Positions 3,050-38,450 of a stretch of 38,724 nucleotides of DNA are shown piece after piece. Each line of letters begins with the position of its first letter. Positions within the stretch are counted from its first letter, which is position 1. The stretch is from Octopus bimaculoides (taxonomy: Eukaryota). The notes beneath the pieces were generated by a model. That model made no database searches and had not been told where the DNA came from. It saw only the letters and a list, made by a program, of their open reading frames with translations. The stretch covers positions 174,517,501-174,556,224 of the forward strand of contig NC_068981.1 in the NCBI RefSeq assembly GCF_001194135.2. The letters are read 5' to 3'. A program made the translations under genes and the position numbers.

Positions 3050-3716
3050 TATAGGGGCCTTCCCAAATAGGGGTGTCCCCAAATAGGCCGTACTCAATCG
3101 CATATGTAGGACCGACTCCCTGAGTTTTCGCCAGGTCTCAGGAAGGCGACTATTTTGCATCTACCGCCAACGTGCATGTCTGGATTATGTGCTTCTAGTT
3201 TCACCAAAACCTGCTCCCACCATCCTTACCCCATCGTCATTNNNNNNNNNNNNNNNNNNNNNNNNNNNNNNNNNNNNNNNNNNNNNNNNNNNNNNNNNNN
3301 NNNNNNNNNNNNNNNNNNNNNNNNNNNNNNNNNNNNNNNNNNNNNNNNNNNNNNNNNNNNNNNNNNNNNNNNNNNNNNNNNNNNNNNNNNNNNNNNNNNN
3401 NNNNNNNNNNNNNNNNNNNNNNNNNNNNNNNNNNNNNNNNNNNNNNNNNNNNNNTCTTCTGCTTGGATCAATCGTTGAGTTTAGAGATTTAGTTTCCTCT
3501 GATTGATCTTCCGTTGAGGTCTTAGCTTGGTGTGGTGATTGGCAAGGACAGCGCTCCTGTGTCCTTGTTTGAACAGACATTGTTTTTAGTTCTAATAGGT
3601 GCCCTCACAGCCTCCTCCAAGGTCCAGCAAGCTGGTTTAGTCGCCGACGACCCGACCATGATTGAGAGGAGCGGGAATACATGGTTACCCGTTGTCGCCA
3701 AGAAGAAACCTCAGCA
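3050..3716 (-). mobile_element. Probable RTE-like LINE 5' region, decayed, interrupted by an assembly gap
   Basis: GC-rich island. The 5' end carries gtcgtcggcgactaaacc, similar to the RTE 5' motif at 26773. Protein similarity to an endonuclease N-terminus is weak and frame-broken. Confidence 0.35.
3242..3454. other. Assembly gap (N run)
   Basis: Run of n. Confidence 1.
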
Positions 3717-3751
3717 CCACACACAAACACGCGTGCGCGCACATATATTTT

Positions 3752-3972
3752 GTGTCTGTGTTTGTCATTCAACCAACACCACTTGGCAACCGGTGTTGGC
3801 TTGTTTATGGTCCTGTAACATAGCAGTTGGGTAAAAGAGACATAGAATAAGTACCAGTCGTAAAAGAAGAATAAACATAAATACGGAGGTCTATTTGTAA
3901 GACTAAAACCCTTCAAAGTGGTGTCCCAGTATGGCTGCCATCCAATGACTAAAGAAAGTAAGAGATAAAACA
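3752..3972 (+). mobile_element. Family A SINE 3' half, degenerate
   Basis: cacttggcaaccggtgttgg...gacatagaataagtacca...cagtatggctgcca...gtaaagag matches 9962-10159 and 24930-25138. Confidence 0.75.
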
Positions 3973-4383
3973 TAGAGAAAAGTTAAGTATTTGTAGCTTC
4001 TTGAAGACATTGCGTATTAACCTATTTGTAAATTGGTTGGTGATTTGAAACCGAAAAAGCTGTATTACGTTGTATCACTGGTAATAGCATATAACTCCCA
4101 TTGTGGGTATTAGTTGTCCGGACCTTGTTCGATATCTGCAGTGATCAAAAGTTATGTCAGATTGTTATTGCCACTTGTAAAATAGCAAGTGTTCTAGTGC
4201 CAAGTGAAAGTAGGGGTGTGGCCAAAGATAGCTTTTGTGTTTGCAACTTAATTAACAGGCTTCATATGCCAAGAGAGATTTTGCGCCCTTCTCGTCTCGT
4301 TTTGCAACGTCACTGTTTCTTATACATGGTGATCGATGTCTGTCAACTTAACGTGATAGCTCTGTAAGTAAAAAGAAAGTGGT

Positions 4384-4385
<2 letters not shown>

Positions 4386-4426
<41 letters not shown>
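4386..4426. repeat. (GATA)n microsatellite
   Basis: Directly visible. Confidence 0.95.
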
Positions 4427-4427
<1 letters not shown>

Positions 4428-4547
4428 GATTGGGTATGCGGGAGAGAAAGTGAGGGAGATAGAGAATGTGGAGAATGAGTTGTGGAAGAGCAAATGAAGA
4501 GTGTTCAAGGAATTATATGTAAAAACTATTGTTCGTATTTCTTTTGA

Positions 4548-4760
4548 GCTTTAGATTAACTCTGTCGAGCAGATTTATGGTTAAACGCGTCTAAAGCTCA
4601 CCATACTGTCTTTATTTCAGACGTAATAAATATAGCTCTGCATTATCTTATGCATCAAAGTACGATAATTTCTCAAGATGATAGTGTGTAAGACGAGAGA
4701 GATTTAACTGCTTTTTCTAGCAGGCCGAGTCACAATGTAGACATCTTGTTGGTTCGATCA
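4548..4760 (-). mobile_element. Family D repeat, degenerate
   Basis: gtcgagcagatttatggttaaa...ctctgcattatc...gatttaactgctttttctagcagg. Confidence 0.55.
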
Positions 4761-5147
4761 TATACTTTACTAAGGATAGAGGAATGAATAATTTCCAAGA
4801 CTCTTCATCAATTTTCAAGACAACTATCTATTTATCATTAACAGGCGATAAGCATGAAAATCTTGTTCAAATCAGGTTATTTCGACAATTCACCAACCGA
4901 CTAGAACTATTCCAAACCATTAACCTTCAAAACCTAATCTACCAGAACTATTTCAGGGGGACTGGAGGTGCTGTGCTTGAATTCAGTAATGACTGAGAAA
5001 TAGTTAACAAGGGAATTACCAATCTACTGATAAAAATTGATAGTTTCTGAATTGTCTTATGCATTAATCAGCGACACAAGAACAATCGGGGCAAGATATT
5101 CATGGGGATAGCAATAAGTGTAAATCACTGGACACCTAACGAGCATT

Positions 5148-5395
5148 ATGTTGTTGCTTGGAGTTTGGTCAGCTCTGATCGAGTACAAATATCATAAAGC
5201 TATTTCAACCATGATTACTGCATGCATTTATGGGTATAAGTAATCACTATCTTAGCCATTCCTTATCTGTTGTCTATTCACATATGGCCTGATAGGATAG
5301 ATCTATGGTTAAAGGCATTCACGGAATGAAAATCTGATATTTATAAATCAAAGACTACATTATTTCTTTGTGTCCTTTAACTTGAGATGGTAGCT
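5148..5395 (-). mobile_element. Family D repeat, two partial tail copies
   Basis: tgttgttgcttggagtttggtcagctctgatcgag and gatctatggttaaaggcattc...gactacattat. Confidence 0.5.
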
Positions 5396-5412
5396 AATAT
5401 TGATTTAAAATA

Positions 5413-5610
5413 TTGGCACCATGTCAAGTTCGGAGGAGTTGGGTATGTCGATTACATCGGCTCTCAGTACTCAACTGGTATTTATTTTATCGACCCCAAA
5501 GAGATGAAAGGTAAAGTCGACTTCGATGGAATTTGAACTCAGAACGTAAAGACGAACGAAATGCCGCTAATCATTTTGCCCGTCGTGGTAACATTTCTGT
5601 CAGCTCGCTG
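5413..5610 (-). mobile_element. tRNA-derived SINE family B (central domain resembling Meta/Sauria SINEs)
   Basis: The reverse complement has a gagttcaaattcc B box and gtcgactttacctttcatctctttggggtcgataaaataaatacca. Near-identical layout to 17214-17421. Confidence 0.85.
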
Positions 5611-5661
5611 TTTTTGATTATAGTGAATATTTGAGAGAGTTTGGCTACGATTTCTCTCCGA

Positions 5662-5920
5662 GGGTTCCATCCCACCACACCCCGATTTCCGGGCCAAAAA
5701 GAAAAAAATGGTTTTGTGGCATATTAGGAGGTCACCGTAATTCATTCAACGCAAAAAGAAAACAATTTCCAATGATTCCAGAATGGGGGGGGGGGTCCGG
5801 TTTCCCACCACCACTTATTTCCAGACAAAAATAAGGGGTTTGCGGCACATTAGGACGTCTGGGTACTTGATTCCACGCAAAAATCCGAGATTTTTTTCTT
5901 AGTGAAAATCGTGGTGGTGA
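5662..5920. repeat. Two diverged tandem units about 126 bp apart with an inverted terminal motif; possible MITE-like element
   Basis: 45-nt cores at 5713-5757 and 5839-5883 match at 36 of 45 positions. ccaccac...gatttcc at the start is mirrored by gaaaatcgtggtgg at 5905-5918. Confidence 0.5.
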
Positions 5921-6994
5921 AGTATGAAAATTTACCATATTCAGTAGGTAGGGACGTTTCGAGTTTTTGCATTGCTCCATTTGAATATCTATATTAACTC
6001 TCTTTGTGCATGTATGTATATATGTATGCATGTATGCATGTATGTATGTATGTATGTATGTATATACACACACATACATATAAACTCAAACATAAACGTA
6101 CAACCTCAAACGCATGTACAGTTCATGCATTAGGTATTTTTTAATACATACATAATGATATCATGAAGCTTAGTAAACGTTCTAGGACCTGAGATCGATA
6201 CATTGCGTCTCACCTAGAAGGCTACGTCTTTGCTATACAGATATAAATAAAAGAAAAAGAAAAAACGGAATTAGCTACTAGAAACTTGATCATTTCAATG
6301 AAAGGAAAGTATTCCACGCGACAATATAAAATGACGATTGTGCCATTTTATTTTTCAATATATCACCCATATCTTCAATAGCGGACCAATGATAAATGCA
6401 AGGTACTACTTTCCCATCAGACATGGCATTGTCACTAAAATCTTCTGTAATGCTATCGGTAAGAAGAATTATCCAGATGACCTTATCAAAGGCACATCAC
6501 AATCAGAGTAAAATATATCACACCTTTAAAATAGAGAGTATGGTTGAAGCATTCCAATAAAAACAGCAATCCGGTATATGCACAATAAACTAAATGTTGT
6601 TGTATGGGTCGGGAAGCAAAACTTAAGCATTCTTGCAGAACCCAGCAGATGAGAATATTCCATTAGAATTTGCATAAAAATGACAACATCAATGGATAAT
6701 CAATCAAAATTACCTGCAGCTCTTATACCCAAATTATAGATTTCCATTTGTACATGTTACCATAGATATATACGTAACAGAAGACCTGCATCAAAACCTA
6801 TAAATACCGGAGTTCTACAAAGGAACAGAGCAGATTGATTCACATTCTTCAAATGTAATCGATGAGAGGTAGCGGAAAATTTATAAAATATTCAAGGGAC
6901 TCTCCATTTGAATGTCCTGGGCTGAAAATATCTACCCAAATACACATATTTTGCAAAGGAAGGCAAATTAAATAAACCCCAGAGAAAACATGTA

Positions 6995-7031
<37 letters not shown>

Positions 7032-7483
7032 NNNNNNNNNNNNNNNNNNNNNNNNNNNNNNNNNNNNNNNNNNNNNNNNNNNNNNNNNNNNNNNNNNNNN
7101 NNNNNNNNNNNNNNNNNNNNNNNNNNNNNNNNNNNNNNNNNNNNNNNNNNNNNNNNNNNNNNNNNNNNNNNNNNNNNNNNNNNNNNNNNNNNNNNNNNNN
7201 NNNNNNNNNNNNNNNNNNNNNNNNNNNNNNNNNNNNNNNNNNNNNNNNNNNNNNNNNNNNNNNNNNNNNNNNNNNNNNNNNNNNNNNNNNNNNNNNNNNN
7301 NNNNNNNNNNNNNNNNNNNNNNNNNNNNNNNNNNNNNNNNNNNNNNNNNNNNNNNNNNNNNNNNNNNNNNNNNNNNNNNNNNNNNNNNNNNNNNNNNNNN
7401 NNNNNNNNNNNNNNNNNNNNNNNNNNNNNNNNNNNNNNNNNNNNNNNNNNNNNNNNNNNNNNNNNNNNNNNNNNNNNNNNNNN
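7032..7483. other. Assembly gap (N run)
   Basis: Run of n. Confidence 1.
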
Positions 7484-7689
7484 ACTATTCAATGGTTTTG
7501 TGGAAAAATAGACATCTGTATCAATCCTGAACGATATCATTATTAGCTTATAAATATAGAATCTGTTCCGTAAAGTTTTAGATATCAAATGGTTATTTTA
7601 GTTATTGTAACAGAAAGAAAAATTACTGCAGCAGAAGAATTAGCTGAAAATACATCAAAAGAAAAAGAATGACAACATTGATGTATCTG

Positions 7690-7850
7690 TTGTCACTCGG
7701 TGTGACAGAAATAGCTATCACATATCACTCTAACTACACCGTAATATCTTAAAGCAAAGCGGATAATGCAGCTCTGGATTTATATACCTTGTAAAAAAAA
7801 AGGGTTTGGTGGATCAGATGTTATTTGGGAAAAACAACGACAAACAGTAA
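7690..7850 (+). mobile_element. Family D repeat, degenerate, opposite orientation
   Basis: gaaatagctatcac...ggataatgcagctctgga...aaacaacgacaaac. Confidence 0.45.
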
Positions 7851-8717
7851 TGATAGAAGGACTACAAGTGTTTGGTAAAAAGCATTTGACGTAATAATTA
7901 TCAACACAGAAATCACTACGATTATAGCAACGCAAACTCAAGCATAGGCATTTTCATCCCCGATGTTATTATTATAATTATCATTCATCTTCGGAAACAC
8001 AAATAATTGTTTGTATTGAACGACTTACTTATGGTCAAAATGGGTAGAAAGGGCTAATATGAAAGTACTGATTCGTATAAAATAATAACGTGGTTGTCAA
8101 ACTTAATGAGCAGATGATAGAAATGCACACAGCGGTTCAAATCTTTTGTTATGAACGGGAATTCTTTATGTTATCCAAATAAGTGATTACCATGGTTTAC
8201 GAAATATCTGATGAAGACTCATTTGTACTGTCTTAGCTGTATTATACTTACTGTTGGTGGCTTTTTGTCTAAGAAATCCTTGTAAATCTTACAAATCTAA
8301 CAAAACAAAAAAAAAGATGAAGTCCTTTTGCAAATATAATCTGCATCTCTATATACGTATGGCATTAAAAGGAAGTACTATTATTCAATTATCGATCATA
8401 GTTCGAAAATTGCTGCACGATTTATAAGTTAGAATCTATTTAAAAATCTCATCATTATTCTTTATAACTTTTGCAGTTATTTAGCCCCTGGTGATTCTCG
8501 ATGAAAGAAATCTATCATTAAAGGTAATCCATTTAAGACCATGTCGTCTTTGAAGTAGTTGTATGCTGTCAACTTAATGTGACAGTCCCTTGAAGGGAAT
8601 AATACTACTGTTGGTTAGACCTAGGAAGCTGCACCGCTTGCTGTCGGCCTTGATGCATTTCCTGTGTCCTTATGCTTACAAGGGGGAGACAAGCACCTCC
8701 ACCCAGCTAAGCCCGCA

Positions 8718-8760
8718 TCCAGAGACACATTTCTGAGTCTTTGCTCGTCATCAGTCTGGA
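8718..8760 (-). ncRNA. Type I hammerhead ribozyme motif
   Basis: Minus strand: tccaga CTGATGA c-gag-caaaga-ctc-a GAAA tgt GTC^ tctgga. Perfect 6-bp stem I, intact core, GUC cleavage triplet, C-A mismatch at the base of stem II. Confidence 0.8.
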
Positions 8761-8886
8761 GTAGCATGGCGAAGTAGTTGTATGCTGTCAACTTAATGTG
8801 ACAATCCCTTGAAGGGCCCTGACACATTTCCTGTGTCCTTATGTTTAAAAGGGGGAGATAAGCACCTTCACCCAGCTAAGCCTGCA

Positions 8887-8908
8887 TCCAGAGACATGTT
8901 TCTGAGTC
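8887..8908 (-). ncRNA. Hammerhead 3' half (5'-truncated second copy)
   Basis: Minus strand: gactca GAAA cat GTC^ tctgga with palindromic ACATGT stem III. The CTGATGA half is absent. Confidence 0.65.
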
Positions 8909-9029
8909 ACTACTGCATAAATCTCTCTGAGAGAGTTAGAAATGTATTATTTCTAAACATGTTGTCTTTGTTTGCTATTCACGCTAATTATATTATATTC
9001 TTTTACTATTTATGGAATTTGAATGAATG

Positions 9030-9090
9030 TTTCTAGGAAATTTGGTCGTTGTTTCGAGTAGGTTGACCGACCACGTAGATGCCCTTTCAG
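9030..9090 (-). mobile_element. Family D repeat head fragment
   Basis: gaaatttggtcgttgtttcgagtaggttgaccgaccacgtaga resembles the gatttg(g/a)ctgct..tctagcagg part of other copies. Confidence 0.45.
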
Positions 9091-9545
9091 TGTCTCCGGA
9101 AGTTACCTGTTTATAAGAGTAGTACCGCAATAGCAACAAATATATCACATTTATTAAATTAAGACTTATTTTCGTGTTGGGTGTCCCTAGTAAGGTTTTC
9201 CCGAAAAGAAATATAATACTATGACATCCAAACGAAATAGACAACAGTAAGAATACATACATACATACATACATACATACACACATACATACATATATAT
9301 AGGTATAAGTTAGAGGTATTTAAAACCTCTAATGGATGGTTAAATACAAAGGCGCTCCTGGTGATTAGCTGCGTAGGTACAGTCCTTGGTAAAAGGTATA
9401 CGGTAGCATGTAATTCAGCGGGTAAACCGTAGTTTAAATTATATGCAAGAAGAAAATGGAGGAAAAATAACAGAAAGAAGTTTGTCGTTTGCACTAATAA
9501 GCTATTAATTTAAATTAATTTGATAAAGAAAAGTGGTAGTAATAG

Positions 9546-24390: not shown

Positions 24391-24720
24391 TTAGGCACAG
24401 AGCCAGCAATTTTGAGGGGAGGGGTAAGTGAATTATATTGACTTCAGTGCTCAACTAGTATTTATTTCATCGACCCATGGATAGTTGGAAGACAATGTCG
24501 ACCTGGGCGGAATTTGAACTCAGAGCGTAAGACCGGAAGAAATATCGCGAAGCATTTTATCCAGCATGCATACGATTCTAAATGCACAAGGCCTGAAATG
24601 GACAAGTCAATTACATCGACCTCAGTATTCAACTGGTACTTATATCGACCCCATATTTAATCGACCCCGGTGGTACTTGAACTTAGAAAGTAAAGTCGAA
24701 GTTAATGCAAAATATTTTTT
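24391..24720 (-). mobile_element. Family B SINE plus an adjacent partial second copy
   Basis: 24391-24580 is near full length; 24588-24720 is partial with a duplicated atcgacccc. Confidence 0.8.
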
Positions 24721-24733
24721 CGCCTTTATATAC

Positions 24734-25138
24734 AGGAGTGGCTGTGTGGTAAGTAGCTTGCTTACGAACCACATGGTTCCGGGTTCAGTCCCACTGCGTG
24801 GCACCTTGGGTAAGTGTCTTCTACTATAGCCTCGGACCGACCACGGCCTTGTGAGTGGATTTGGTAGACGGAAACTGAAAGAAGCCCGTCGCATATATGT
24901 ATTAATATATATGTATGTATGTGTGCATAAGTTTGTTTGTCGGTGTTTGTCCCCCCAACATCGCTTGACAACCGATGCTGGTGTGTTTACGTCTCTGTAA
25001 CGTAGCGGTTCGGCAAAAGAGACCGATAGAATAAGTACCAGGTTTACAAAGAATAAGTCGTGGGGTCGATTTACTCGACTAAAGGCGGTGCTCCAGCATG
25101 GCCACAGTCAAATTACTGAAACAAGTAAAAAGAAAAGA
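24734..25138 (+). mobile_element. Family A CORE-like SINE, full length, with internal (TA)/(TG) spacer
   Basis: ggagtggctgtgtggtaag A box, gggttcagtccc B box, tggcaccttgggtaagtgtc CORE-like region, spacer at 24893-24930, 3' half ending in an A-rich tail. Confidence 0.92.
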
Positions 25139-26569
25139 AAGCATAAAGAGTTTTAATGCTGAGAAAGTGAATGTTTCTTTTCCAACGTCAAAATTCAGAG
25201 TTAATTATTTTCGTTACCTTCATTTAACTTTCCTATAAATTCATGTGTCAGTGAAGACAACTTCTGGTATGCAATTAATATTTTATAGTTATATGATGAT
25301 AGTGGAATATACTTTTCAAAACCTACTTACGTTCAGAGATGCTCAGATGTTCTAAATGTAGAATTACTTCAAATATTATGTGATAAAATATCACGAGATC
25401 TTATTAACATCCCTAATGATACAAAAGTAAATGTATAGAGATCATATATAACATATGAACGATACTTGTTTGAATTAATATATTGATCGACCTTTAGGTC
25501 ATAATAACAGAGTTACAAAGATTTACTTGTGGCAGAAGTAACATATACGCACTTGAACAAGTTGCCAAGAGCATTCTCTCACATACTATCATGAACTAAT
25601 TAAAAACATCGTTGGGGACATAGGATCGATTGATCAAATAGTGATTCTACTTGAAAGACGTGATTAGTTAGCTTTGAATTTTTATGGTCATACCACAGAT
25701 GTGTCTATCTTGAAAGGTCAATAAAGTTTACTTTATAACTGTTTTACAATGCTTTAAACTTTCAGCCAACTAAAAAGGCAACGAAAGAGAAATGCACAGT
25801 AGGCATTTAATGTTCATGTAGCACATAGTTGCGTTGTGGCCAGAAAACTTTAGATGTAGACACATACAAAATATACACACGTGTTTCTATATTTCATTAT
25901 ATCATTTAATACCCAACACACGTGCACATACCTATATAGACGAGTGGACAAACGAACGGAACTAGCACTTAACACACACACACACACGTAAATATGTCCA
26001 ACATGATCAGATGTATAATGTTGTGTAGTTGAAGAAATGTGGTGTACTTGAAGAAATCGCTCTATTACACTCAATCTTTCCTCTTCTGGAATGTCGGCTA
26101 GCACCTCGACTGAGAATGTTAGTTTACAACAGTTTATCCGGTAGATTAACGGCATCAAACTGACATGTCTGAACTTTTCAATTGCTTGAATAAGTGGACT
26201 AGCAAGTCCATTATATGAGCATGTATATGGTTGAGTAGTCCTCGTTCACATGTATCCTTATAGTAAACCACAAGAGAAATGAACATGACATATGTGGCAA
26301 GGTTAGGTTATATATTTAAAGTGAAACTCCATCCGACGGACTTCTATAGATATTCTGTCAACAAAGTCAATACAAATTCACACAAAAGGAACGACTATAT
26401 AAAATGGTGGTCACCCATGCAATCATCTAAAATGTAGAACCCGTGACCGGAACACCGAATATAGGCTTGTTTAATACTGTGGTAAGCATGTTTAATATAG
26501 GCCATCACGTCATACACACATACTCGTATATAATATATGTATCATCAGATTAACCACGTAATAGTATTA

Positions 26570-26980: not shown

Positions 26981-27212
26981 CGTTCCTAGAAAGGAATATA
27001 TGTTTAGAAGGACCAATCCAAGGTAGGCATAAGACATATGCATCTGAGATGACATTTTGCATGCGTATCTCTGGAACATCCTAGATACTTTCGGAGATGT
27101 ACTAAACGTAATTATTTCAAACAGGAAGAAGGTATTTCTTGTTTTATGTAACCAAAATGTAGGTATGTGTTTGTATTTTTACATTAGAGTGTCCACATAT
27201 TGATTTCAAATT

Positions 27213-27408
27213 TTGGCACAAGGTCATCAATTGTGGGGGAGGGTGAAAATCGATTACAACAAGCCCCGTGCTCAACTAGTACTTACTTAATCGACCCCGA
27301 AAGGAAGAAGTCGACCTCGGCAGAATTTGAACTTAGAATGCGCACACAGACTGAATGCCGCTAAGCATTTTACTTAGCGGGTTAACGATTCTGCCGGCTC
27401 ACCGCCTT
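27213..27408 (-). mobile_element. Family B SINE
   Basis: ggcacaagg...atcgaccccgaaagga...ctcaccgcctt. Confidence 0.85.
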
Positions 27409-27622
27409 AGTGTATGTTCGGGTATTGCTGCTGTTATTTCTCTGGTTTCGTTCCTTGCTTGGATCTTATATCTTATGGAAATTTAATTTTTTGTTTATTT
27501 TATGTATAACTTTGGTTACTATTATCTACTTGTTATTTGTTGAACTGTATATTTTCTCTATACTATATTTTTTCTATATGCATATTGTTTTCTATATTCA
27601 CAGTTATACAGGTTTCAAATAT

Positions 27623-28366: not shown

Positions 28367-29224
28367 NNNNNNNNNNNNNNNNNNNNNNNNNNNNNNNNNN
28401 NNNNNNNNNNNNNNNNNNNNNNNNNNNNNNNNNNNNNNNNNNNNNNNNNNNNNNNNNNNNNNNNNNNNNNNNNNNNNNNNNNNNNNNNNNNNNNNNNNNN
28501 NNNNNNNNNNNNNNNNNNNNNNNNNNNNNNNNNNNNNNNNNNNNNNNNNNNNNNNNNNNNNNNNNNNNNNNNNNNNNNNNNNNNNNNNNNNNNNNNNNNN
28601 NNNNNNNNNNNNNNNNNNNNNNNNNNNNNNNNNNNNNNNNNNNNNNNNNNNNNNNNNNNNNNNNNNNNNNNNNNNNNNNNNNNNNNNNNNNNNNNNNNNN
28701 NNNNNNNNNNNNNNNNNNNNNNNNNNNNNNNNNNNNNNNNNNNNNNNNNNNNNNNNNNNNNNNNNNNNNNNNNNNNNNNNNNNNNNNNNNNNNNNNNNNN
28801 NNNNNNNNNNNNNNNNNNNNNNNNNNNNNNNNNNNNNNNNNNNNNNNNNNNNNNNNNNNNNNNNNNNNNNNNNNNNNNNNNNNNNNNNNNNNNNNNNNNN
28901 NNNNNNNNNNNNNNNNNNNNNNNNNNNNNNNNNNNNNNNNNNNNNNNNNNNNNNNNNNNNNNNNNNNNNNNNNNNNNNNNNNNNNNNNNNNNNNNNNNNN
29001 NNNNNNNNNNNNNNNNNNNNNNNNNNNNNNNNNNNNNNNNNNNNNNNNNNNNNNNNNNNNNNNNNNNNNNNNNNNNNNNNNNNNNNNNNNNNNNNNNNNN
29101 NNNNNNNNNNNNNNNNNNNNNNNNNNNNNNNNNNNNNNNNNNNNNNNNNNNNNNNNNNNNNNNNNNNNNNNNNNNNNNNNNNNNNNNNNNNNNNNNNNNN
29201 NNNNNNNNNNNNNNNNNNNNNNNN
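28367..29224. other. Assembly gap (N run)
   Basis: Run of n. Confidence 1.
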
Positions 29225-37064: not shown

Positions 37065-37325
<261 letters not shown>

Positions 37326-37341
37326 ATATATATATATATAT

Positions 37342-37561
37342 NNNNNNNNNNNNNNNNNNNNNNNNNNNNNNNNNNNNNNNNNNNNNNNNNNNNNNNNNNN
37401 NNNNNNNNNNNNNNNNNNNNNNNNNNNNNNNNNNNNNNNNNNNNNNNNNNNNNNNNNNNNNNNNNNNNNNNNNNNNNNNNNNNNNNNNNNNNNNNNNNNN
37501 NNNNNNNNNNNNNNNNNNNNNNNNNNNNNNNNNNNNNNNNNNNNNNNNNNNNNNNNNNNNN
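37342..37561. other. Assembly gap (N run)
   Basis: Run of n. Confidence 1.
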
Positions 37562-38450
37562 ATTTAGTAATTTCGTTACTTTGTGCACTGTATATTTCTC
37601 CTAGGTGTTCTTTAAAAATAATATCAGCTGTGTATATAAGAGTATTAATATTCCAGTCATTAACATCATATGATTCCATGCGCCCTTCAGCAACATCGTT
37701 GATTACCTTAAACATTAGATCGGTGATTTATTTTTCACTCGTGTTGGGAATAGCCTGTTGCTCAATGAAAGCTTTGAGAAAGTAGAAAATTTTGTGCGAA
37801 TTGTAATTTTTAAATGTTTTTGAGTTGGATGTATTCTGCAGTTTTCGCTACTAAGGCAGCTAAATTTGGAGACACACTCGAATTTAGCGATGGTGGTTTG
37901 TTTACATTATTTTTTTATGCCGCTTCTGGCAGATTTTGACCCATTTTCAGTGTTTTGGAAGGATCGAGGACCAGTTGATTTGTGTTTTTACAAAAGATGT
38001 TTGTTGTCGGAGCTCTTTCGCCGTGAAGGTATTTAAGTTCAGATGAGCTTCACCCAAGTATTGTTTTAATCGCTTCATGTATCCAATTGAAGGGTAATTT
38101 CGGGCTTTTTCATAGCACCGAAGTAAATCTTGGTTTAGTTGTTGAGTCCAACTTACTGGTGAAGTAGTTCTGATTTCATCGGTGGTGACGTTGTTAGTTT
38201 CACCTGTGGTGGTGTTAGTTTCAGCCATAATCGTGTTAGCGAGATTCCACGTGGTGTAGATGTATATTTTAAAATCTGTTCAGGATAGCGCTAGGATGGC
38301 AAGTAAAAGGTGTTTCTCTTATTAATTGCTGGAGAAATAAACCGGTTACGAATTTAGGCAGGAGAAGTTGACATATTTCTAGAGGAAGGCGTTCAAAACG
38401 AACTTTTTAAACATTCCTCTACACCTGCACGTCCGATGCTAACGGCGCGA
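37562..38450 (-). mobile_element. R4/Dong-like LINE 5' end: about 220-nt 5' UTR plus decayed ORF N-terminus
   Basis: ORF 38228-37947 has WT..LN.DLL.CY..A......GYMKRLK......FT.K.LRQQ, typical of R4-clade N-termini. Later frames give NRLFPTRV and WNINTLIYTA. Frameshifts and stops are present. Confidence 0.7.

Follow-up and report, generated by a model that had tools for sequence, protein, structure and literature searches.

Introduction

Metazoan retrozymes are short, non-coding elements arranged as head-to-tail repeats of 170–400 nucleotides (nt), with one type I hammerhead ribozyme per unit and a GC content below 50%; where target-site duplications occur, they exceed 4 bp (PMC7229834). Cervera and de la Pena (2020, PMC7229834), who give the definition and life cycle of the family, describe such repeats as widespread among invertebrates and count a mollusc among the hosts. 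Monomers of about 150–450 bp, in arrays from dimers upward, are regarded as typical, and the circular RNAs of published retrozymes are described as highly self-paired. The canonical metazoan hammerhead has a helix I of 6 bp, a helix II of 4 bp, and a helix III of only 1–2 bp with a small (2–4-nt) palindromic loop (PMC4209133). A link between retrozymes and Penelope-like elements has been drawn in a 2026 preprint (10.64898/2026.07.22.740005). Here we analyze a 38.7-kb stretch of the Octopus bimaculoides genome (contig NC_068981.1, positions 174,517,501 to 174,556,224; the window, in which all coordinates below are counted) and, within it, a hammerhead-bearing tandem repeat on the minus strand at 8908–8552. 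On balance, we take this locus to be the relic of an element of the metazoan non-LTR (long terminal repeat) retrozyme type, a short, non-autonomous tandem with a hammerhead that was inserted long ago.

Architecture of the Array

Direct reading of the minus strand and a repeat alignment both give a head-to-tail repeat of ~1.9 units between 8908 and 8552. The GUC triplets at 8895–8893 and 8726–8724 place the two predicted cleavage sites at 8893/8892 and 8724/8723, which are 169 nt apart. A repeat search recovered the array as two blocks, one of 94 nt with 89% identity and a spacing of 169, and the other of 46 nt with 98% identity and a spacing of 219, and from these two spacings the extra segment in unit 2 is 50 nt long (8647–8598). 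The array was not reported by Tandem Repeats Finder, as expected given the indel and the presence of less than two full copies. A first-pass annotation of this DNA had described the motif, the upstream half-site, the cleavage-site coordinates and the 169-nt spacing, all of which are correct on our reading of the minus strand; its extra segment is also present, although at 50 nt rather than about 51, and its three hairpins are all found, with GACACA/UGUGUC intact only in unit 1.

The array begins mid-unit with GACUCA-GAAA-CAUG-UC^UCUGGA, such that the first unit is truncated at its 5′ end by the start of the insertion and is represented by a hammerhead 3′ half-site (8887–8908, with cleavage predicted at 8893/8892). 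Unit 1 runs from one predicted cleavage site to the other and is the 169-nt monomer (8724–8892, GC 46.7%). Unit 2 (8552–8723) is truncated at its 3′ end, the array stopping mid-unit at ...CAACUACUUC, before the 5′ half of another hammerhead. The locus as a whole therefore contains one complete ribozyme and one 3′ half-site, as unit 2 stops before its own ribozyme. By alignment of the units, the 50-nt indel (8598–8647) is present in unit 2 and absent from unit 1, and the monomer could accordingly be 219 nt rather than 169 nt in length. Over 139 aligned positions the units disagree at 11 (~8% divergence); all but one of these differences are transitions (10/11), and several, at CA/TG pairs, suggest lost CpG.

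The monomer is non-coding, in that no Pfam domain is found in any frame and its short open frames are without homologues. An LTR, a primer-binding site and a polypurine tract are all absent, which together with a GC content of 46.7–47.9% fits what is known of non-LTR retrozymes.

The Hammerhead Motif

The complete motif lies at 8760–8718 of the minus strand and reads UCCAGA-CUGAUGA-CGAGCAAAGACUCA-GAAA-UGUG-UC^UCUGGA or, when split by helix, UCCAGA-CUGAUGA-CGAG-CAAAGA-CUCA-GAAA-UGUG-UC^UCUGGA. It is the sole complete type I hammerhead of the locus and in its extended form spans 8709–8770, where 8760–8718 comprises the core and the proximal part of helix I and cleavage is predicted after C8724. 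The catalytic core is complete (8754–8724; CUGAUGA ... GAAA ... UC^), with C3, U4, G5, A6, N7, G8 and A9, G12, A13 and A14, the A15.1-U16.1 pair and H17 all in place, and the three helices have the type I topology. Six of the six pairs of helix I are Watson-Crick, in line with the perfect 6-bp stem I that had been proposed at 8760–8718. They are followed by a UAC/U internal loop and then by a distal 6-bp stem, and this layout of internal loop and distal stem is that of the minimum-energy fold of 8771–8709. Helix II (CGAG/CUCA) consists of 3 bp and a C.A mismatch at its base and is closed by the 6-nt loop 2, CAAAGA. Helix III is a single A-U pair with a 4-nt loop, which is palindromic in the half-site (CAUG) and non-palindromic in the complete copy (UGUG).

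As read from the sequence, the motif fits the canonical metazoan form except for the C.A at positions 10.1/11.1. An ancestral C-G pair at 10.1/11.1, lost by CpG decay, is possible as an inference. Candidate elements of a loop 1/loop 2 tertiary contact are also present, as judged by their similarity to the UAC and CAAAUA of the Schistosoma mansoni ribozyme, and the half-site carries GAAACAUGUC, which is identical to that of the axolotl Ax330 retrozyme ribozyme.

Detection by Covariance Models and Chance Expectation

A covariance model was built from only three validated retrozyme ribozymes, those of coral Amil224, mussel Mg353 and axolotl Ax353, with sequences from the PMC7229834 supplement; axolotl Ax330 and the engineered Schistosoma N79 ribozyme, both misaligned by MAFFT, were left out of the alignment, and the search was run with filters off. 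With this model the motif scores 18.9 bits (E about 0.0025) and ranks first in the window, where the next match has 13.2 bits and lacks the core, and three independent control hammerheads score 30–38 bits. The Rfam check that the first-pass annotation had suggested gave no match to Hammerhead_1. Rfam likewise misses the three control hammerheads, which are perfect type I motifs from marine metagenome contigs and have a 1-bp helix III. The negative result hence weighs little; hammerheads with so short a helix III escape the Rfam models.

There is one instance of the bare core pattern in the window, where 0.06 would be expected, and a fuller descriptor with 6/6 pairs in helix I and 3 bp in helix II was found in 0 of 600 simulated windows. 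The product of partial frequencies gives at most about 3e-4 motifs per window, which amounts to up to a few tens of chance motifs in a 2.8-Gb genome, and for that reason the motif alone is not decisive. What settles its identity as a hammerhead is the combination of the cleavage-phased tandem repeat, the canonical matches outside the core and the covariance-model match. From the custom model and these non-core matches, we conclude that the predicted ribozyme is a genuine, canonical animal type I hammerhead.

The marine contigs came from a pattern search for this helix I and core; the element they carry is unrelated to the octopus locus and they served as positive controls only. All three, OBQE01000158.1 (1–1284), Ga0314680_10104106 (627–671) and OQVM01076114 (763–806), contain a textbook type I hammerhead, AGCCAGA-CUGAUGA-GACC-UGAG-GGUC-GAAA-CUA-GUC^UCUGGUG, in which helix II is GACC/GGUC with a G10.1-C11.1 pair. 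In OBQE01000158.1 the hammerhead repeats after 727 nt with a near-identical overlap, which points to a source element of about 727 nt, either tandem or circular; the end of this contig is an Illumina adapter. The other two contigs share sequence with OBQE01000158.1 beyond the ribozyme.

The Insertion, Its Probable Target-Site Duplication and Its Leader

The array is bracketed by two copies of a probable 12–13-bp target-site duplication, CAAAGACAACATG upstream (8958–8970, minus strand) and CAAAGACGACATG downstream (8540–8552, minus strand), the latter abutting the last base of the repeat. The upstream copy matches 8552–8540 at 12 of 13 positions, giving the consensus CAAAGAC[A/G]ACATG, and the sole mismatch is a CpG to CpA change. 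An equal match within 150 nt upstream arises in about 0.1% of shuffles (P about 0.001) and in 2 of the 466 pieces of actual window sequence (P about 0.004). The probable duplication would delimit an insertion of 405 nt (8957–8553), and it is because of this duplication that we regard the array as having arrived by insertion. Its length of more than 4 bp agrees with what is seen for metazoan non-LTR retrozymes. The GC content is 45% in the insertion and 48% in the repeat, compared with 32% in the flanks, and the flanks of the insertion are unique in the sequence compared.

Between the upstream copy of the duplication and the first base of the repeat, at the 5′ end of the insertion, there is a 49-nt leader that is not part of the repeat (8909–8957, minus strand). 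It contains two small palindromic hairpins and folds with −9.1 kcal/mol. Comparison of the leader with the monomer and with the 50-nt indel, on both strands of the element, gave no significant similarity, the reverse complement of the ribozyme 3′ half yielding a weak match at 14 of 18 positions (P about 0.16). The leader could be 5′ filler, transduced flank of a donor, an inverted truncated fragment or a Penelope-type tail, and it fits a linear template at least as well as a circular one. On the plus strand, 8894–8962 gives an Rfam match to SNORD79 at 20.1 bits (E 1.8), far below the gathering score, which is almost certainly noise since the palindromic hairpins of the leader explain it.

Decay and Probable Inactivity of the Copy

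At two sites one unit has CA where the other has TG, the signature of independent decay of an ancestral CpG, and one of these sites lies in loop 3 of the ribozyme. The calculated helix III self-duplex is −6.0 kcal/mol for the self-complementary ACAUGU of the half-site and −3.9 kcal/mol for the inferred CpG form ACGUGU, and the AUGUGU of the complete copy forms none (+0.4 kcal/mol). The pairwise distance between the units is 0.084 (with a Jukes-Cantor calibration quoted for repeats of O. vulgaris), which suggests an age of roughly 10–25 million years (about 12 from the distance itself), a rough figure that is inflated by the CpG sites.

No tRNA gene was found, nor was a B box found inside the element, and an internal tRNA-type promoter for polymerase III is therefore unlikely. 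This copy is probably inactive, given that it has one full ribozyme, a C.A at the base of helix II, a loop 3 that is not self-complementary, no evident promoter and units that have drifted apart by ~8%. A hammerhead in all repeats, which is expected of an active element, is likewise missing here. That the copy might be inactive had been raised in the first-pass annotation on the grounds of the C.A mismatch and the single full ribozyme, and to these the loss of the loop 3 palindrome can now be added.

Genomic Surroundings and Sequence Searches

No Pfam domain was found at E ≤ 1 in any stop-free segment of at least 40 amino acids on either strand of 3500–14000, a region in which the 452-nt gap at 7032–7483 is unread. 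Since neither a Penelope reverse transcriptase nor a GIY-YIG domain is present within 5 kb, the array is not the pseudo-LTR (pLTR) of a recognizable full-length element. A Penelope pLTR at the locus was considered and rejected, as both domains are missing nearby and the ribozyme departs from the minimal type. No Penelope-like element was seen in the window; Penelope families, the presumed partners of animal retrozymes, have been annotated in the literature in the genomes of both O. vulgaris and O. bimaculoides.

Searches of larger collections were negative. Two repeat-specific 24–25-mers had no match in viral contigs, a 20-mer of the repeat had none in metagenome contigs or prokaryote genomes, and the translated sense frame of the repeat had none among 5.8 billion proteins. 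The translated plus-strand frame, compared with 1.84 billion representatives, gave a single, spurious low-complexity match (P0003), and in an exact look-up of two open reading frames of the window neither was on record.

The window is AT-rich and rich in microsatellites. It contains six runs of N that total 2085 nt (3242–3454, 7032–7483, 20093–20338, 21506–21601, 28367–29224 and 37342–37561), most of them beside AT or AC microsatellites, with the gap at 7032–7483 lying 1.1 kb from the element, and so has the character of a gapped draft scaffold. Two kinds of interspersed repeat are present. One resembles a short interspersed nuclear element (SINE), is ~410 nt long and occurs in several copies (24733–25141, 9899–10161, 12316–12495, 37164–37341 and weaker ones); it is found at multiple sites on two O. 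vulgaris chromosomes with 75–89% identity, and its spurious translation (12254–12490) matches only two proteins, each named “Hypothetical predicted protein [Octopus vulgaris].” The other is short (5441–5614, 10215–10362, 17200–17421, 24417–24651 and 27198–27409) and is common to the O. vulgaris loci with about 70–81% identity. Taken by themselves, the shared repeats put the host in or near Octopus, as an octopod close to O. vulgaris but probably distinct from it. At 37562–38228 on the minus strand two adjacent protein-like frames resemble a transposon remnant, one of 93 amino acids (37947–38228) and one of about 50 amino acids (37562–37715) that runs into an assembly gap. The 93-amino-acid frame has no homologue among 5.8 billion proteins and is not recorded as a called gene.

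Discussion

We propose that the locus is a relic of a retrozyme-type insertion. The retrozyme-like character put forward in the first-pass annotation is upheld by the hammerhead, by a tandem of retrozyme size and by the probable target-site duplication. The novelty attached to it was overstated, since 235 Rfam Hammerhead_1 loci had already been listed for the giant squid in its genome paper and repeats of this kind have been described as widespread in invertebrates. In the literature we found no paper on a cephalopod retrozyme and no analysis of an octopus hammerhead, and no cephalopod appears in the supplement of PMC7229834. The element is of a known kind and is represented here by a single decayed copy; what is new is the probable duplication around a 405-nt insertion, the contrast in GC content, and the lack of a reverse transcriptase or endonuclease domain within 5 kb.

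Several observations weigh against the retrozyme interpretation. A multi-copy family is not demonstrated because a single locus is seen, with no second copy detected by blastn in the window or in 40 kb (two loci) of O. vulgaris. Folded as a circle, the 169-nt monomer reaches −39.5 kcal/mol and its shuffles −38.3 ± 4.3 kcal/mol (z −0.28), a value computed on the decayed copy and not on a family consensus. With regard to the ribozyme, the normally G-C pair 10.1/11.1 is C10.1/A11.1, which is non-standard according to the covariance model, and the region has a minimum-energy fold other than the hammerhead. The Rfam hammerhead models (RF00163 and relatives) give no match at the gathering score, nor at E ≤ 10 when 701 nt or 101 nt were searched, and the 18.9 bits of the custom model are a modest score with an E-value that is calibrated only roughly. 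The leader inside the duplication is not explained by simple rolling-circle copying, and one Penelope-like element has been found to insert unprocessed RNA in vitro, for which hammerhead cleavage was unneeded.

The last two points also speak for the alternative that the element is a satellite- or SINE-like hammerhead repeat copied from a linear read-through transcript by an enzyme of a long interspersed nuclear element (LINE) or of a Penelope element, with no circle involved and with the two units simply reflecting the donor array. A 49-nt unrelated leader fits transduced donor flank or 5′ filler, the monomer circle lacks unusual self-pairing, and the Penelope enzyme did use unprocessed RNA in vitro. 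However, the 3′ junction has no poly(A) or simple-repeat tail, the unit contains no tRNA-like or B-box promoter element, and in coral, mussel and axolotl, where elements of such architecture have been studied, these do accumulate in circular form; we consider copying of this kind rather unlikely. Somewhat lower still in our estimation is a fragment of a Penelope-like element, that is, a solo or partial pLTR with its hammerhead, derived from a tandem and truncated insertion, such that no separate retrozyme family need exist. Penelope-like pLTRs do carry hammerheads and are known from partial tandem insertions with duplications of variable length and a short extra tail at one end, Penelope families exist in octopus genomes, and the 2026 preprint mentioned above (10.64898/2026.07.22.740005) derives retrozymes from pLTRs; the leader, with its weak 14/18 match, could in this case be the tail or an inverted truncated copy. 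That match is nevertheless not significant (P about 0.16), the segments of at least 40 amino acids within 5 kb on either side give no reverse transcriptase or GIY-YIG signal, the unit is merely 169–219 nt, and the canonical 6-bp helix I, the 4-position helix II and the looped helix III set the ribozyme apart from the minimal Penelope type.

A chance hammerhead-like motif within an unrelated local tandem duplication is very improbable. It is true that a relaxed descriptor could turn up by chance at as many as a few tens of places across a 2.8-Gb genome, that Rfam gives no match, that helix II is mismatched at its most conserved pair and that the data compared contain a single locus. Chance would nevertheless have to account for a motif that is in phase with the repeat, with a second GUC^UCUGGA exactly one unit upstream, for a UAC/U loop exactly 6 bp from the core, for a 6-nt CAAAxA loop 2 and a GAAACAUGUC that match those of validated ribozymes, and for an E-value of 0.0025 with the custom model, while the duplication and the contrast in GC content mark an insertion and not a local duplication. 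We give hardly any credence to the idea that the motif is a single-copy regulatory self-cleaving ribozyme domesticated by the host, in the manner of the hammerheads conserved in amniote introns. It occurs once in the data compared and has a canonical type I architecture with tertiary-contact elements, but its units have drifted by 8% with CpG decay that includes loop 3 and the base of helix II, the tandem layout and the target-site duplication indicate a mobile origin, and no gene context is evident.

If the locus is indeed a retrozyme relic, its life cycle can be outlined from the published biology of the family, from which the steps of cleavage, ligation and reverse transcription are taken. 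A multimeric transcript of an intact array would cut itself after the GUC of each unit, probably in a double-hammerhead (dimer) form in which neighboring ribozymes are paired through helix III; this form is proposed in view of helix III, which has one base pair and a self-complementary loop. The resulting unit-length RNAs, with 5′-OH and 2′,3′-cyclic phosphate ends, would be circularized by a host tRNA ligase of the RtcB type. The circular or multimeric RNA would then be copied to tandem cDNA and inserted at a staggered break, with reverse transcriptase and endonuclease supplied by an autonomous element, most likely a Penelope-like one. The circular step is an assumption even for the family as a whole, given that Penelope insertion in vitro used unprocessed RNA.

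More speculatively, and with considerable doubt on our part, octopods may harbor a still-active retrozyme family, which would be the first to be characterized in cephalopods. Its units of ~170–220 nt would be cut by a hammerhead that depends on dimers and has a non-canonical pair, possibly C-G rather than G-C, at 10.1/11.1, and would build up as abundant small circular RNAs; this locus would be one dead copy of that family. Were the element multi-copy and expressed, cephalopods would join the animals that make small ribozyme-processed circular RNAs, and the compact monomer of 169–219 nt would lend itself to the study of dimer-dependent hammerhead cleavage. A dated, duplication-flanked insertion with an odd leader would in that event also be informative as to whether the template for copying is a circle or a linear transcript, and whether the enzyme is of the Penelope type. 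The main practical value of the locus at present is as an annotation seed for octopus repeat libraries.

Comparison With Known Hammerhead-Bearing Elements

The plant LTR retrozymes (Cervera et al., 2016, PMC4918200) resemble the octopus element in that they are also non-autonomous and in that their hammerheads delimit a circularized RNA that is the presumed transposition intermediate. They differ in having type III hammerheads, LTRs of roughly 350 bp, a primer-binding site and a polypurine tract, 4-bp duplications, a GC content above 55%, circles of 600–1000 nt and Gypsy-type partners (PMC4918200). The minimal hammerheads of Penelope pLTRs share the type I topology, a very weak or absent helix III of palindromic character and a proposed action as dimers, and are likewise tied to tandem insertions with variable target-site duplications. 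The minimal Penelope ribozyme has a helix II of 6–8 bp, a helix I of 4–5 bp and one base more between positions 9 and 10.1, and its helix III is without a loop, whereas the octopus motif has a helix II of 3–4 bp, a helix I of 6 bp with a distal stem and a 4-nt helix III loop. Penelope pLTRs also flank an open reading frame for reverse transcriptase and GIY-YIG, and there is none at the octopus locus.

With respect to the ribozyme itself, close parallels are found in Schistosoma and in salamanders. Sm-alpha of S. mansoni has the same 6-bp helix I, a UAC opposite a single U, and a distal stem (GGAUG-UAC-UACCAG-CUGAUGA), and its core is identical to that of the octopus motif. Its loop 2 is CAAAUA rather than CAAAGA, its helix II is GUCC/GGAC with a canonical G10.1-C11.1 pair as opposed to CGAG/CUCA with C.A, and its helix III is longer. 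The satellite hammerheads of axolotl and newt (HHR_Amex1 in Rtz330 and HHR_Amex2 in Rtz353) have a helix III of 1 bp with a palindromic tetraloop and are efficient only as dimers; the palindrome has been lost from the complete octopus copy (UGUG), unlike the loop in axolotl. Axolotl Ax330, which cleaves efficiently only as a dimer, has GAAACAUGUC as in the octopus half-site and a 6-nt loop 2, CAAAAA, compared with CAAAGA in octopus. There is also a precedent for a mismatch at the base of helix II, which is U.U in the active HHR_Amex2 of axolotl and C.A in the octopus copy. The octopus monomer is half the size of the axolotl ones (169–219 vs. 330–350 nt), and the host phylum differs.

Among whole elements, the metazoan non-LTR retrozymes used for comparison include Mg353 of Mytilus galloprovincialis, Amil224 of Acropora millepora and Rtz of Philodina roseola (174 nt) (PMC7229834). 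Unlike these, the octopus locus has ~1.9 units with one complete ribozyme and a 49-nt leader inside the duplication, and its predicted circle is not highly self-paired; outside the ribozyme it has no detectable similarity in sequence to published retrozymes. Like them, it is a short non-coding tandem that is free of an LTR, a primer-binding site and a polypurine tract, and it resides in a host genome that contains Penelope-like elements.

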